Assembly: GCF_036588685.1 (NCBI RefSeq)
Contig: NC_086379.1
Coordinates: 85,064,001 to 85,128,000 of the forward strand
DNA length: 64,000 nucleotides
Direction of reading: 5' to 3'
DNA from: Mytilus trossulus
Lineage: Eukaryota
The notes under the pieces were generated by a model, which was not told the DNA's origin, searched no databases, and saw only the letters and a list, made by a program, of their open reading frames with translations. Made by a program: the position numbers and the translations under genes. This document shows, piece by piece, positions 3,101-46,717 of the stretch (position 1 is the first letter of the stretch; each line of letters opens with the position of its first letter).

Positions 3101-6100
3101 ATATGCAGAAACAACAAAAGAAAAATCGAAAAAAAAAGTGTTGCTAAACTTTTTTGGCTCAGTATATATCATGACTTTGAAAATAAAAAAAATATATTTT
3201 CATCAAATATTCAGATGTTAATAGGAGGCCTTCAAACATTTTACGTTCAACAAAAGTAGGAAAAATAACAATTAGCTTCATTATGAAATTTTGTTGTTTA
3301 ATTAATAATTACTCACAACATCATTTTCTTTAAAGGGTTGTATGCAATACAATATTGTTTATGACTATGTTGTAGCTCATCTTTAATTTTAACCAAAACT
3401 ATATCAGTGTATATCTCATATAGTCATTTAAGTTCAAATACCAAGTGGCATTTTTATTACCAATCAAGCATTGCAAACAAAAATTAGTGTAAAATGAAGA
3501 TTTTAAAATCTAATGTCAATTAAATGACTGAAATTTATTTCTGTACTTTTTTTTTCATGACCTTGATTCAAAATTCTGTTTTGGTCATTGACATTTCATA
3601 TTAAGACTTGACGCTTCACATCCCTTCTACTCAAACATTGTTGATATAATATTAACATATGTCTTATGGCACTTTTGTGTCAGTCTTATACTATAATACT
3701 GAGGAGTTATTTATCTGCTGTTTTAAGAAAGTCAAAATTTCTGTTGCAAAACTTCTTGAAATGTTAGATAAATATTTCTTTCCTCTGAATGCAATTTTTT
3801 CTAAACTATATTGTGATCTACCATACCTTCTGTGTGAGTGACAACAGTGAAGTTATATACTGATTTGACACCATCTTAACAGTACATGTCTGTAGAAGTA
3901 TAAATGGTAGAATGGACTCCATACAATGTACTGAATCCGTTCCAAGTTGTCCCATCATTAACTTTATACACTTGTGTGCTGAAAAATATAGAAATGATGA
4001 GAACTGAATGCAAAGATTTATATCTGTATAAACAGGAAAATAATCAAGGAACTTATGTTTGATTCAAGTATCTACAATGTTTTAAATTGATTTATATTAT
4101 ATATTTGTGACAGGTCTTACCCGAAATTAGGAGATATTCAGAGAAGTAATGTTTGGCTGTTGTATCTACACTCTTGACGATTCTGTCCAATATCTACAAA
4201 ATAAATACACATTTTAACAAGAATGTGTCCCTAGTACACAGATACTGCACTCACACTATCATTTTCTATGTTAAGTGGACCACAAAACTCTAATTTGGCA
4301 TTAAAATTAGAAAGATCATATCATAGGGAACATGTGTATCAATTTTCAAGTTGATTGGACTGCAACTTCATTAAAATCTACCTTGACCAAATACTATAAC
4401 CTGGAGCGGGACAGACATACAAACAAACGGACAGACAAACAAATGAACCGACTAATGGACAGAGGCAATGACCAGAAAACATAATGCCCCTCTACTAAAG
4501 TTTGGTAGGCAGGGCTTAACCCTTTCACCGATTGCTGCCCAGACAGAGGCTACTCTGAGACGATGGCTTCCCTGGTTACTATTACTCAAGTGGGAGGTCT
4601 TCATAATAAATGCCAATAAAAACTTGTTTGTACTTATTTGTGTATTTATTTCATTCACTAACACCCTGTACACAGTTTTGTTCATGTTTTGATATTTTTT
4701 TCTTCATAAAAATTCAAATTTTCCAATTTCGGCATATTTTGGGTGAAATTCTCAAAATTCTGCTTTTTAACCCCAAATCGTAATTTTTTAACCCAAAACA
4801 GGAAAATTTTGAAAAATTTTATGAGGCTGTACAAATTCCTCACATTGAACGATGTCCATTCCAAGTGTTTTGTACATAAAACCACGTTTTGAGTCAAAAA
4901 AGTATACTAGCTTGGCTTCAATTCTTCCATATTCTTTCAAAAAAAATGTTCCCTCATTTCAAATTCTCGTAAATTTCCTCTGATTTTGACACGGTTTTCA
5001 ACAAACAGAACCGCCATGTTTACACTTTCATCTGGGTATTCATCAAAGAAAGATAACTCATGTTTGCACTGTTTTGAGCGGGAAACATAAAAGAGGTATT
5101 CCAATCCCTATAAAACGGGACTCCTCGTCAGCTGTTTGAAGCGTGAATCCCGGTAAACCGGGACTCATCGGCGAAAGGGTTAAAAACAAGATGAAATAAT
5201 TCTTTTTCTTAGCTTAACTGTTAACTCATAACATAAATAATTAACAAACCTCCAAGAAATGCTCATATGCCAGTGGCCATTGTCATTTTGTTATTCTAAA
5301 ATTCCTTGAATTTTGATGAGAAATGGCTGTCCCAATTAATAGATTAACATTATATTAACTTCTCACATCTCAAAATTCCTCTAATCTCAGAGTATTTTCA
5401 GATGAACTTAACCAATGACTAGAGTTGACAGTCTGAGATATATCATGTACTCTAACCTCTAGAACTTAACCAATGACTAGAGTTGACAGTCTGTGATATA
5501 TCATGTACTCTAACCTCTAGAACTTAACTAATGACTAGAGTTGACAGTCTGTGATATGTCATGTATTCTAACCTCTAGAACTTAACCAATGACTAGAGTT
5601 GACAGTCTGAGATATATCATGTACTCTAACCTCTAGAACTTAACCAATGACTAGAGTTGACAGTCTGAGATATATCATGTACTCTAACCTCTAGAACTTA
5701 ACCAATGACTAGAGTTGACAGTCTGAGATATATCATGTACTCTAACCTCTAGAACTTAACTAATGACTAGAGTTGACAGTCTGAGATATATCATGTACTC
5801 TAACCTCTAGAACTTAACCAATGACTAGAGTTGCCAGTCTGAGATATATCATGTACTCTAACCTCTAGAACTTAACCAATGACTAGAGTTGACAGTCTGA
5901 GATATATCATGTATTCTAACCTCTAGAACTTAACCAATGACTAGAGTTGACAGTCTGAGATATATCATGTACTCTAACCTCTAGAACTTAACTAATGACT
6001 AGAGTTGACAGTCTGAGATATATCATGTATTCTAACCTCTAGAACTTAACCAATGACTAGAGTTGACAGTCTGAGATATATCATGTATTCTAACCTCTAG

Positions 6101-46717: not shown

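Follow-up and report, generated by a model that had tools for sequence, protein, structure and literature searches.

Minisatellites spanning the 5' splice sites of NOL11 and SMG1 exons in the mussel Mytilus trossulus

In a 64-kb window of the Mytilus trossulus genome (the whole stretch analyzed here, 64,000 nt of contig NC_086379.1, containing no N), seven tandem arrays start within a coding exon, 3-85 nt inside it, and enclose its GT donor. One belongs to a gene identified as SMG1 and the remaining six to NOL11, in which 6 of the 15 donors head arrays of 3-55 copies each and 2 further donors are followed by a decayed second copy. The reading that we favor, with a probability of roughly 0.7, is that these are genuine minisatellites of the type found in intron 7 of the human F7 gene, with the first unit lying over the exon-intron boundary, that they grew by unequal exchange, and that their placement is biased to exon ends.

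Results

Exon model of NOL11

The gene that carries most of the arrays was modeled as follows.

14756..46717, plus strand: NOL11 gene, 16 exons, the last one including the stop
14756-14884, 16847-16957, 19217-19273, 22088-22282, plus strand: NOL11 exons 1-4
24059-24209, 25283-25441, 28262-28344, 30345-30509, plus strand: NOL11 exons 5-8
31017-31085, 35442-35617, 38925-39050, 41843-41930, plus strand: NOL11 exons 9-12
42577-42655, 43645-43728, 44272-44379, 46595-46717 (with stop), plus strand: NOL11 exons 13-16

Each exon was compared individually with the M. trossulus protein XP_063446504.1, and all 16 translations were exact substrings of it, covering residues 1-633. Matches to Pfam NOL11_N and Nol11_C are colinear along the exons, and colinearity extends over every junction in the orthologues, which comprised proteins of four Mytilus species, one from Pinctada and one of 623 aa derived from Logan. 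As the translations agree exactly with XP_063446504.1, the first copy of each array is predicted to be the working exon end plus GT donor, that is, the junction that yields the conserved protein. An earlier note on this DNA, made from its letters alone, had claimed as much, and its count of 6 arrays among 15 NOL11 donors, with relics at two more, is borne out by the same model. A whole-genome search with the unique intron sequence 38880-42560 for a second haplotype of the NOL11 locus found none, returning only transposon copies.

Architecture of the junction arrays

All seven arrays were recovered by TRF where the earlier note had placed them.

5404..8761, minus strand: SMG1 donor array, 58 nt x 58, unit of 11 nt exon plus 47 nt intron (TRF)
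8751..8927, minus strand: SMG1 exon, the last 11 nt of which begin the donor array; donor GT at 8750-8749
19266..21590, plus strand: exon 3 donor array, 46 nt x 50, unit of 8 nt exon plus 38 nt intron (TRF)
22198..23604, plus strand: exon 4 donor array, 95 nt x 14.8, unit of 85 nt exon plus 10 nt intron (TRF)
25439..27663, plus strand: exon 6 donor array, 44 nt x 50.6, unit of 3 nt exon plus 41 nt intron (TRF)
35578..37876, plus strand: exon 10 donor array, 42 nt units with ~51 nt variants, ~45-55 copies (TRF)
42577..42856, plus strand: exon 13 array, 96 nt x 2.9, unit of the whole exon 13 (79 nt) plus 17 nt intron (TRF)
44320-45440, plus strand: exon 15 donor array, part 1, 73 nt x 15, 58-60 nt exon plus 13-15 nt intron (TRF)
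45404-46033, plus strand: exon 15 donor array, part 2, 54 nt derivative x 11.7, continuing the 73 nt part (TRF)

The SMG1 identity was assigned because adjacent exons match consecutive residues of solved SMG1 structures: in phmmer searches against solved SMG1 chains, the exon at 8751..8927 matched residues 374-432 (E 2.6e-6) and the upstream exon, inside 9302-9586, matched residues 312-374 (E 3.5e-20). A Pfam search of the N-terminal SMG1 exons gave no matches, and no solved structure matched the open frame 3-356 (minus strand).

In all seven cases the units, of 42-96 nt, follow one another head to tail in 2.9-58 copies with 85-97% matches (TRF), as expected of minisatellites. The first monomer consists of the exon end plus the authentic 5' splice site, which later monomers repeat, as in the array of F7 intron 7. 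Higher-order structure is also present. Two types of unit take turns along the SMG1 array in a pattern of roughly three units, and of 500 shuffles, 498 left neighboring units more alike than they are in the array; the exon 10 array, whose basic unit is 40 nt of exon plus GT, mixes units of 42 and 51 nt. The alternating multi-unit pattern of the SMG1 array is typical of unequal exchange and argues against a single rolling-circle burst, so that the rolling-circle amplification suggested in the earlier note finds no support there. Several arrays come close to 2.3 kb in total length, and the final copy of the exon 4 array has decayed and merges into the old intron.

At the array ends we found either 2-6 nt of microhomology (AAGTTC, AAGTAC, TAT, AG) or 6-8 nt of filler; AAGTTC occurs at either end of the SMG1 array, and at exon 10, AAGTAC is found both at position -40 of the exon and at position +3 of the intron.

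The junction units are unrelated to one another, each deriving from its own exon, and in a whole-genome search the units of exons 3 and 6 each gave one candidate region, their own locus. As both tested units are single-locus, a dispersed repeat or mobile-element satellite was discarded and the junction arrays do not form a mobile family, in agreement with what the earlier note had deduced from the lack of shared sequence. New introns of the AGGT type were likewise rejected: unique intron sequence and the old acceptor lie beyond each array, the units providing donors only. Base composition as the sole cause was set aside, the G+C content of the arrays (35%) differing little from that of the intron background (31%).

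Relics and other arrays

The two decayed copies were located downstream of exons 5 and 14.

24257..24311, plus strand: decayed second copy of exon 5 end plus donor (original 24171-24223)
43983..44034, plus strand: decayed copy of exon 14 end plus donor (original 43698-43748)
31793..34886, plus strand: intron 9 internal array, 27 nt x ~115, away from any junction (TRF)

The exon 5 relic scored 36 in local alignment, where shuffles reached at most 24, and the exon 14 relic scored 52, where they reached at most 27; both were also seen by tblastn. Four NOL11 arrays span no splice site (24689-25041, 28357-28631, 31793-34886 and 42972-43554); the one at 28357 (134 nt x 2) begins at position +13 of intron 7, leaving the donor outside. 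Once arrays are excluded, only ~0.2-1 kb of intron remains in several introns.

An array over an acceptor, absent from the earlier note, was also detected in the SMG1 part of the same window.

12233..12343, minus strand: SMG1 acceptor-spanning array, 39 nt x 2.8 (TRF)

Its unit consists of 24 nt of intron, AG, 9 nt of exon and 6 nt of filler, and the last copy alone continues into the exon.

Decoy donors and the predicted protein

The repeated donors are almost all intact: the exact donor 9-mer is retained in 49/50 copies of the exon 3 array (CAT/GTGAGT), and in 13/15, 50/50, ~43/50 and 3/3 copies of other NOL11 arrays, and all 58/58 donors of the SMG1 array are exact. Splicing at the first donor would yield the protein that is conserved across four Mytilus species and Pinctada, and RefSeq also lists isoforms on decoys. 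Judged from annotation and protein homology only, the best reading is that the first donor is the one used, so that the arrays would be kept out of the mRNA. Use of a decoy is predicted to cause a frameshift or an early stop in 6 of the 7 window arrays. On the other hand, the exon 13 unit is in frame with all copies open (intron 12, just before it, is of the U12 type), and an aminoacyl-tRNA synthetase array from the sample described below is also in frame and open. The RefSeq NOL11 isoforms X2 and X3 have their start ATGs inside the exon 4 array, with copies 9 and 13 supplying their donors; they may be real, or may be a product of reads mapping to several copies. A search for proteins homologous to the open frame that reads through the exon 4 array gave no candidates.

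Frequency of arrays at exon ends

Within NOL11, 6 donor-spanning arrays were found against ~0.15-0.56 expected (P ~1e-8 to 5e-6, as a post hoc statistic). An independent sample was taken elsewhere in the genome, comprising 98 Pfam-verified exons of three gene families in 219.6 kb with 34 arrays. Among the pre-verified exons, 4 donor-spanning arrays were found versus 1.03 expected (P = 0.02); with two exons recognized later by conserved motifs the count rises to 6 versus 1.06, a value reached in 0 of 4000 simulations, and corresponds to about 1 donor in 20 (6 per ~100 exons). Arrays spanning an acceptor occurred once, against 0.98 expected. The excess at donors for which the earlier note had proposed a check is thus present in this 220-kb sample, and no such excess is seen at acceptors. 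Pooling window and sample, donor and acceptor arrays stand at 13:2 (P = 0.007). Another donor-array case on the same chromosome was examined and confirmed. Cases outside the window include CCT, aminoacyl-tRNA synthetase and myosin genes. Detecting exons from flanking open frames in the absence of annotation was abandoned as too noisy in a genome of 33% G+C, though it gave one further verified case.

Recurrence at unrelated genes is 4-6 times above the expectation from uniform placement, and these counts support donor-spanning arrays being commoner than uniform placement predicts, with a modest result in the strict enrichment test (P = 0.02). The sample units are also rich in exon sequence, with a mean exon share of 0.80 (P = 0.003 versus 0.5) and an intron tail of 2-26 nt; of 14 cases, 11 have the right-hand breakpoint of the unit 2-26 nt inside the intron. 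By contrast, donor-like motifs do not behave as general seeds of arrays: in 28 other intronic arrays they showed neither enrichment nor strand bias, with mean percentiles of 0.48 for sense and 0.51 for antisense.

Discussion

Origin and growth of the arrays

Under the favored reading, each array would have originated in one short tandem duplication that happened to take in the donor, produced by replication slippage or microhomology-mediated end joining. Exon definition, choosing in the 5'-to-3' direction, would pick the donor nearest to the upstream acceptor, and the arrays would be harmless because the later copies leave as intron. Growth would then have proceeded through unequal exchange, fastest in this window, of which tandem arrays make up 31.5%, compared with 5.8% of genic samples elsewhere in the genome. 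The excess of donor arrays, together with exon-rich units carrying a 2-26 nt intron tail, suggests a bias, whose cause would be either that exon ends are favored for duplication or growth while selection purges fully exonic events, or that breaks cluster just beyond the donor. Of the process that the earlier note had proposed, nucleation of duplication at exon/intron boundaries, the donor excess stands; transcription, splicing, R-loops or rolling circles are no more than candidate causes.

More tentatively, the arrays could reflect a process specific to the Mytilus lineage that starts amplification at exon edges, with breakpoints from a few to ~26 nt past the donor, and that yields thousands of junction satellites. 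If so, such satellites may be more frequent at donors than at acceptors, some arrays may settle at ~2.3 kb, and splicing may routinely choose 1 of 50-100 identical sites.

Coupling to transcription or splicing is a possibility that we regard as rather improbable. Here the duplication would be started in germline cells by polymerase pausing, by R-loops or by a lesion at the 5' splice site, hence its polarity downstream of donors, which is in keeping with the predominance of donor over acceptor arrays. The unit breakpoint, 2-26 nt into the intron, would lie roughly at the position that established structural work gives for RNA polymerase II as U1 snRNP meets the emerging 5' splice site, and this correspondence would lend the proposal support. 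However, 2 of the 6 independent-sample cases are myosin heavy-chain genes, whose transcription in the germline seems unlikely, sense-strand donor motifs are not in excess in the 28 other intronic arrays, and acceptor-spanning arrays, apparently of tens to over 100 copies, occur elsewhere in the genome as well.

Less probable still is chance alone, in which arrays arise in an array-rich region with short original introns, selection removes those that disturb the mRNA, and junctions are not favored. The array content of the window, the short non-array remainders of several introns, acceptor arrays at their expected rate and the P value of 0.02 in the strict donor test all fit this explanation. 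It accounts poorly for the NOL11 count with its two relics, for the 4-6 donor arrays against 1.03-1.06 expected in the independent sample, for the uneven position of the donor within the units and for the 13:2 ratio of donor to acceptor arrays.

A function for the arrays seems improbable, whether as a series of alternative donors by which protein length is adjusted or transcripts are routed to nonsense-mediated decay, or as U1-binding sites within introns that aid exon definition or keep premature polyadenylation in check where introns are AT-rich. The decoy donors are intact almost throughout, X2 and X3 are annotated on decoys, and the exon 13 and aminoacyl-tRNA synthetase arrays are in frame and open, as a function would lead one to expect; but young homogenized arrays (96-98% alike) would keep their decoys intact anyway, decoy use would disrupt the frame in 6 of the 7 window arrays, the relics are arrays that were permitted to rot, and the other intronic arrays have no surplus of sense-strand donor motifs.

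Misassembly of junctions that are truly single copy, to which the similar lengths near 2.3 kb of several arrays might point, is very improbable, as copies differ by 2-4% in structured patterns, decayed relics and last copies are present, the same structure recurs at many unrelated loci, NCBI protein models on the public assembly include array-encoded peptides, and arrays of 0.3-3.4 kb are short beside current long reads.

Significance

How the spliceosome selects a 5' splice site is put to a natural test when 50 perfect copies trail the original donor; human studies of this question concern a few genes, in which the copies number 5-25. If the figure of about 1 donor in 20 that our small sample suggests holds, the genome would contain hundreds to thousands of such natural experiments, with the acceptor arrays as the mirror case, in which the last copy has to be chosen. 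Should the excess at exon ends extend genome-wide, it would link exon-intron structure to the birth or growth of tandem repeats and would bear on intron lengthening. The arrays also mislead annotation, as illustrated by isoforms X2 and X3 of NOL11 beginning inside one of them.

Comparison with known systems

Satellites of bivalves have been linked to MITEs or Helitrons, with tandem repeats carried by dispersed elements. The mussel arrays resemble these in lying within bivalve introns and differ in that the two tested units are single-locus and each junction unit comes from its own exon. A report on minisatellites of C. elegans deals with a dispersed family, so it is not comparable. In human subtelomeres, minisatellites cluster near chromosome ends; the mussel window, 278 kb from the scaffold end and with its high content of tandem arrays, is similar in this respect, but proximity to an end leaves the preference for donors unexplained.

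In the model of Rogers, introns are reportedly gained through tandem duplication of an exonic segment with AGGT. Both involve a short tandem duplication reaching over coding sequence and kept silent, the extra copy being spliced away, whereas the mussel intron pre-exists with its old acceptor, and the duplication only lengthens it, to tens of copies.

The closest counterparts are human minisatellites in which the first monomer lies over an exon-intron boundary, described in F7, IFI6, CBS, LMNB2 and PDGF (PMC1557585). They include F7 IVS7, with 5-9 copies of 37 bp, intron 2 of IFI6/6-16, with 25 pseudo-sites, IVS13 of CBS and intron 4 of PDGF, and the 5' splice site lying furthest upstream yields the normal mRNA (PMC1557585). 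As in the mussel, unit 1 consists of exon end plus donor and the same 5' splice site recurs in later units within the intron, and the unit sizes of 37-100 bp match. The mussel arrays differ in reaching 50-58 copies, in that splicing is predicted here from annotation and homology, and in the presence of six arrays and two relics within one 16-exon gene. The earlier note had left open whether the phenomenon had been described: our literature search found these human single-gene cases with the same structure (PMC1557585) and no genome-wide account of donor-spanning minisatellites in mussels. The structure is therefore already known gene by gene in humans, and it is its frequency in the mussel that is unusual.

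Gene models and arrays in the window

Tandem Repeats Finder reported every array claimed by the earlier note at the coordinates claimed for it, and with a filter of period at least 12 and at least 2.8 copies it found 22 tandem arrays covering 31.5% of the 64 kb window. Read in register, each of the claimed arrays opens a few to 85 nt upstream of the GT, which is present in every unit. In the assembly searched (1.30 Gb) the window lies at C7:85,064,001-85,128,000. The 65-residue peptide of exon 4, used as a HMMER query, led to a 633-residue protein in a cluster of NOL11-like proteins from M. 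californianus, M. edulis, M. galloprovincialis and M. trossulus. Compared singly, exon by exon, the translations of all 16 NOL11 exons are exact stretches of M. trossulus XP_063446504.1 and jointly cover residues 1-633, and the NOL11_N and Nol11_C Pfam matches are colinear in the window. The RefSeq model X1 takes the first donor at all arrays, so that in this model copy 1 supplies the junction of the conserved protein, in line with the earlier claim. SMG1 was identified from two adjoining exons that align to solved SMG1 structures at consecutive residues 312-374 and 374-432, the second of which ends 11 nt inside the 58 nt array.

Donor-spanning arrays of the window (NOL11, plus strand; SMG1, minus strand), with exon + intron parts of the unit
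NOL11 exon 3: 8 + 38 nt, 50 copies
NOL11 exon 4: 85 + 10 nt, 14.8 copies
NOL11 exon 6: 3 + 41 nt, 50.6 copies
NOL11 exon 10: 40 + 2 nt, about 45-55 copies
NOL11 exon 13: 79 + 17 nt, entire exon, 2.9 copies
NOL11 exon 15: 58-60 + 13-15 nt x 15, then a 54 nt derivative x 11.7
SMG1: 11 + 47 nt, 58 copies

Nearly all the decoy donors are intact (exact 9-mer in 49/50, 13/15, 50/50, about 43/50, 3/3 and 58/58). In six of the seven arrays, reading on past donor 1 leads to a stop or shifts the frame, and the 96 nt unit of exon 13 keeps an open frame across every copy. The RefSeq NOL11 isoforms X2 and X3 (520 aa) have start ATGs inside the exon 4 array (window 22890 and 23269), are read over a unit junction and are spliced at the donors of copies 9 and 13; decoys may genuinely be used here, or the models may be an annotation effect caused by spliced reads that align equally to several copies. 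The donors of NOL11 exons 5 and 14 are trailed by decayed second copies, the two relics of the earlier count, and duplication, present or past, has therefore affected 8 of the 15 NOL11 donors. The remaining four NOL11 arrays lie within introns without spanning a splice site, and one begins at position +13 of intron 7. SMG1 also carries an array across an acceptor (39 nt x 2.8), of which the last copy alone is continuous with the exon. Three arrays with different units are of nearly equal total length (19266-21590, 2325 nt; 25439-27663, 2225 nt; 35578-37876, 2299 nt).

Other features of the NOL11 locus were recorded. Intron 12 (window 41931-42576) has GTATCCTTT at its 5' end, with TACTTAAC some 12 nt upstream of the 3' splice site, and from these motifs looks U12-type. 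Intron 11 holds an element of about 2.2 kb (window 39532-41759) bounded by 41 nt terminal inverted repeats; C9 carries a copy of it at 98%, and its 1.1 kb core is present in at least 40 copies elsewhere (86-94% identity). No second haplotype of the locus turned up in a whole-genome search with unique NOL11 intron sequence. Dispersed repeats lie in intron 7 (window 28650-29675; about 1.0 kb, at least 36 copies at 94-98%) and intron 2 (window 18001-18854; about 0.85 kb, at least 3 copies at 96%). In the NOL11 model of Pinctada imbricata 19 residues are missing (alignment columns about 530-550) that correspond to the greater part of exon 13 in Mytilus, the one triplicated in the window; either the annotation has a gap there or the proteins may truly differ.

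Arrays at donors compared with chance

For NOL11 the comparison was post hoc and based on 10 arrays, about 16 kb of non-array intron and 15 donors. Six donor-spanning arrays were observed against 0.56 expected under uniform placement (P = 5e-6, post hoc) and 0.15 expected at the array birth rate of an independent sample (P = 1e-8, post hoc). That sample, chosen as an unbiased test, consisted of exons found with Pfam models at other places in this genome (myosin head, CCT chaperonins and class I aminoacyl-tRNA synthetases), with 1.5 kb on each side; after merging, 52 intervals totalling 219.6 kb contained 98 verified exon matches and 34 arrays. Loci taken from it carry L-numbers, and G000 denotes the genome.

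Splice-site-spanning arrays of the independent sample (exon + intron parts unless stated)
CCT exon donor, pre-verified: 33 + 23 nt, x 3
Second CCT exon donor, pre-verified: 61 + 26 nt, at least 6 copies
Class I aminoacyl-tRNA synthetase donor, pre-verified, L080 (G000:C3:56258010-56261114) positions 1588-2533: 64 + 11 nt (75 nt unit), x 12.6
Myosin exon donor, pre-verified: 64 + 15 nt, x 3
Synthetase WFDSG exon donor, exon recognised afterwards by its conserved motif: 52 + 2 nt, x 8
Myosin heavy chain LNEASVLHNL exon donor, exon recognised afterwards by its conserved motif: 53 + 7 nt, x 7
CCT exon acceptor, L048 (G000:C11:12737810-12740959) positions 1-1529: 30 nt intron + 29 nt exon, at least 26 copies

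Simulation of the sample gave an expectation of 1.03 donor-spanning and 0.98 acceptor-spanning arrays. The four pre-verified donor arrays exceed this (P of 4 or more = 0.02), and six were reached in 0 of 4000 simulations, a figure biased by the two exons added afterwards. The single acceptor-spanning array matches its expectation. Donor-spanning outnumber acceptor-spanning arrays by 13:2 in window and sample together (P = 0.007) and by 6:1 in the independent sample alone; genome-wide the ratio could be closer to 2:1. The units are also rich in exon, with a mean share of 0.80 in the independent sample (P = 0.003 vs 0.5) and P = 0.014 against an even spread for the 14 verified cases, in 11 of which the right-hand breakpoint lies 2-26 nt inside the intron. 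A further donor array, 29 Mb away on the same chromosome, repeats 49 nt of a long open exon and 22 nt of intron (71 nt x 8), the GT being changed to GC in three copies.

In the L080 array the frame is open across the two units read, and by its sequence use of the first decoy would insert a 25-residue repeat with no stop. In the L048 array the last copy alone continues into the exon and is the working copy; splicing must therefore pass over at least 25 identical 3' splice sites.

Other gene loci were recorded as well. L031 (G000:C6:36674839-36678987) matches Cpn60/TCP1 over profile positions 1-367 in a single intronless open frame of 600 codons, with a 33 nt x 6.7 repeat at its start, and may be a retrogene. 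SNF2-domain exons on a small contig (G000:C17:317593-329843) and at G000:C8:22749550-22759350 match the same Pfam profile positions one by one, perhaps through a second haplotype left unplaced or through recent duplication.

Origin and growth of the arrays

The donor-spanning arrays are ordinary minisatellites. That they are not a mobile family, as proposed earlier, follows from a whole-genome search with the exon 3 and exon 6 units, each of which was found at its own locus only. Rolling-circle amplification, also proposed, fares poorly at SMG1, where two unit types alternate in a roughly three-unit pattern and neighbouring units are less alike than in 498 of 500 shuffled orders, which fits multi-unit unequal exchange rather than a single rolling-circle burst.

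Coupling of array birth to transcription or splicing is possible, and is weakened on two counts. Two of the cases are in myosin heavy chain, and donor-like motifs are not enriched, on one strand or the other, in the other 28 intronic arrays, so that the 5' splice site motif alone is not a seed of arrays. Of the earlier note, what was seen is confirmed, and the interpretation finds support in part: the absence of mobility and, with moderate support, the donor excess stand, and the coupling loses ground. Arrays in general have a G+C content of 35%, against an intron background of 31%.

Short direct repeats are common to both breakpoints of the arrays at SMG1 (AAGTTC), NOL11 exon 10 (AAGTAC), NOL11 exon 3 (AG) and one aminoacyl-tRNA synthetase (TAT), and in the arrays of exons 4 and 13 the units are joined through 6-8 nt of filler not present in the old intron. 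Replication slippage and microhomology-mediated end joining typically leave such repeats or filler, and one or the other probably began these arrays. In the exon 4 array the final copy has decayed and passes into the old intron, which has its own GTAAGT.

Each minisatellite would thus start as a short duplication taking in the donor, leaving the mRNA unaltered provided that the first donor is the one used, and would grow through unequal exchange, most strongly in this window, near the scaffold end. Under exon definition the first copy would be used at donors and, by a mirror rule, the last at acceptors. The donor excess and the exon-rich units suggest either that duplication or growth favours exon ends, selection purging the events that are fully exonic, or that breaks cluster just beyond the donor. 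Splicing kinetics could explain why acceptor arrays are scarcer: decoy acceptors would precede the real one in transcription and be usable at once, and decoy donors would have no comparable head start over the real donor.

Comparison with known systems

In the literature searched, no account was found, for mussels or for other organisms, of donor-spanning arrays as a common feature across a genome. Human genes of exactly this structure have been described, namely F7, the interferon-inducible 6-16 gene (25 pseudo-sites), CBS, LMNB2 and PDGF, and experiments on F7 show that, among several identical sites, splicing takes the most upstream one alone (PMC1557585). As in the mussel arrays, the donor is repeated within the intron, and the structure is therefore of a known kind. 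The interest of the mussel arrays lies in their density in one gene and in the excess at exon ends genome-wide, for which support is moderate.
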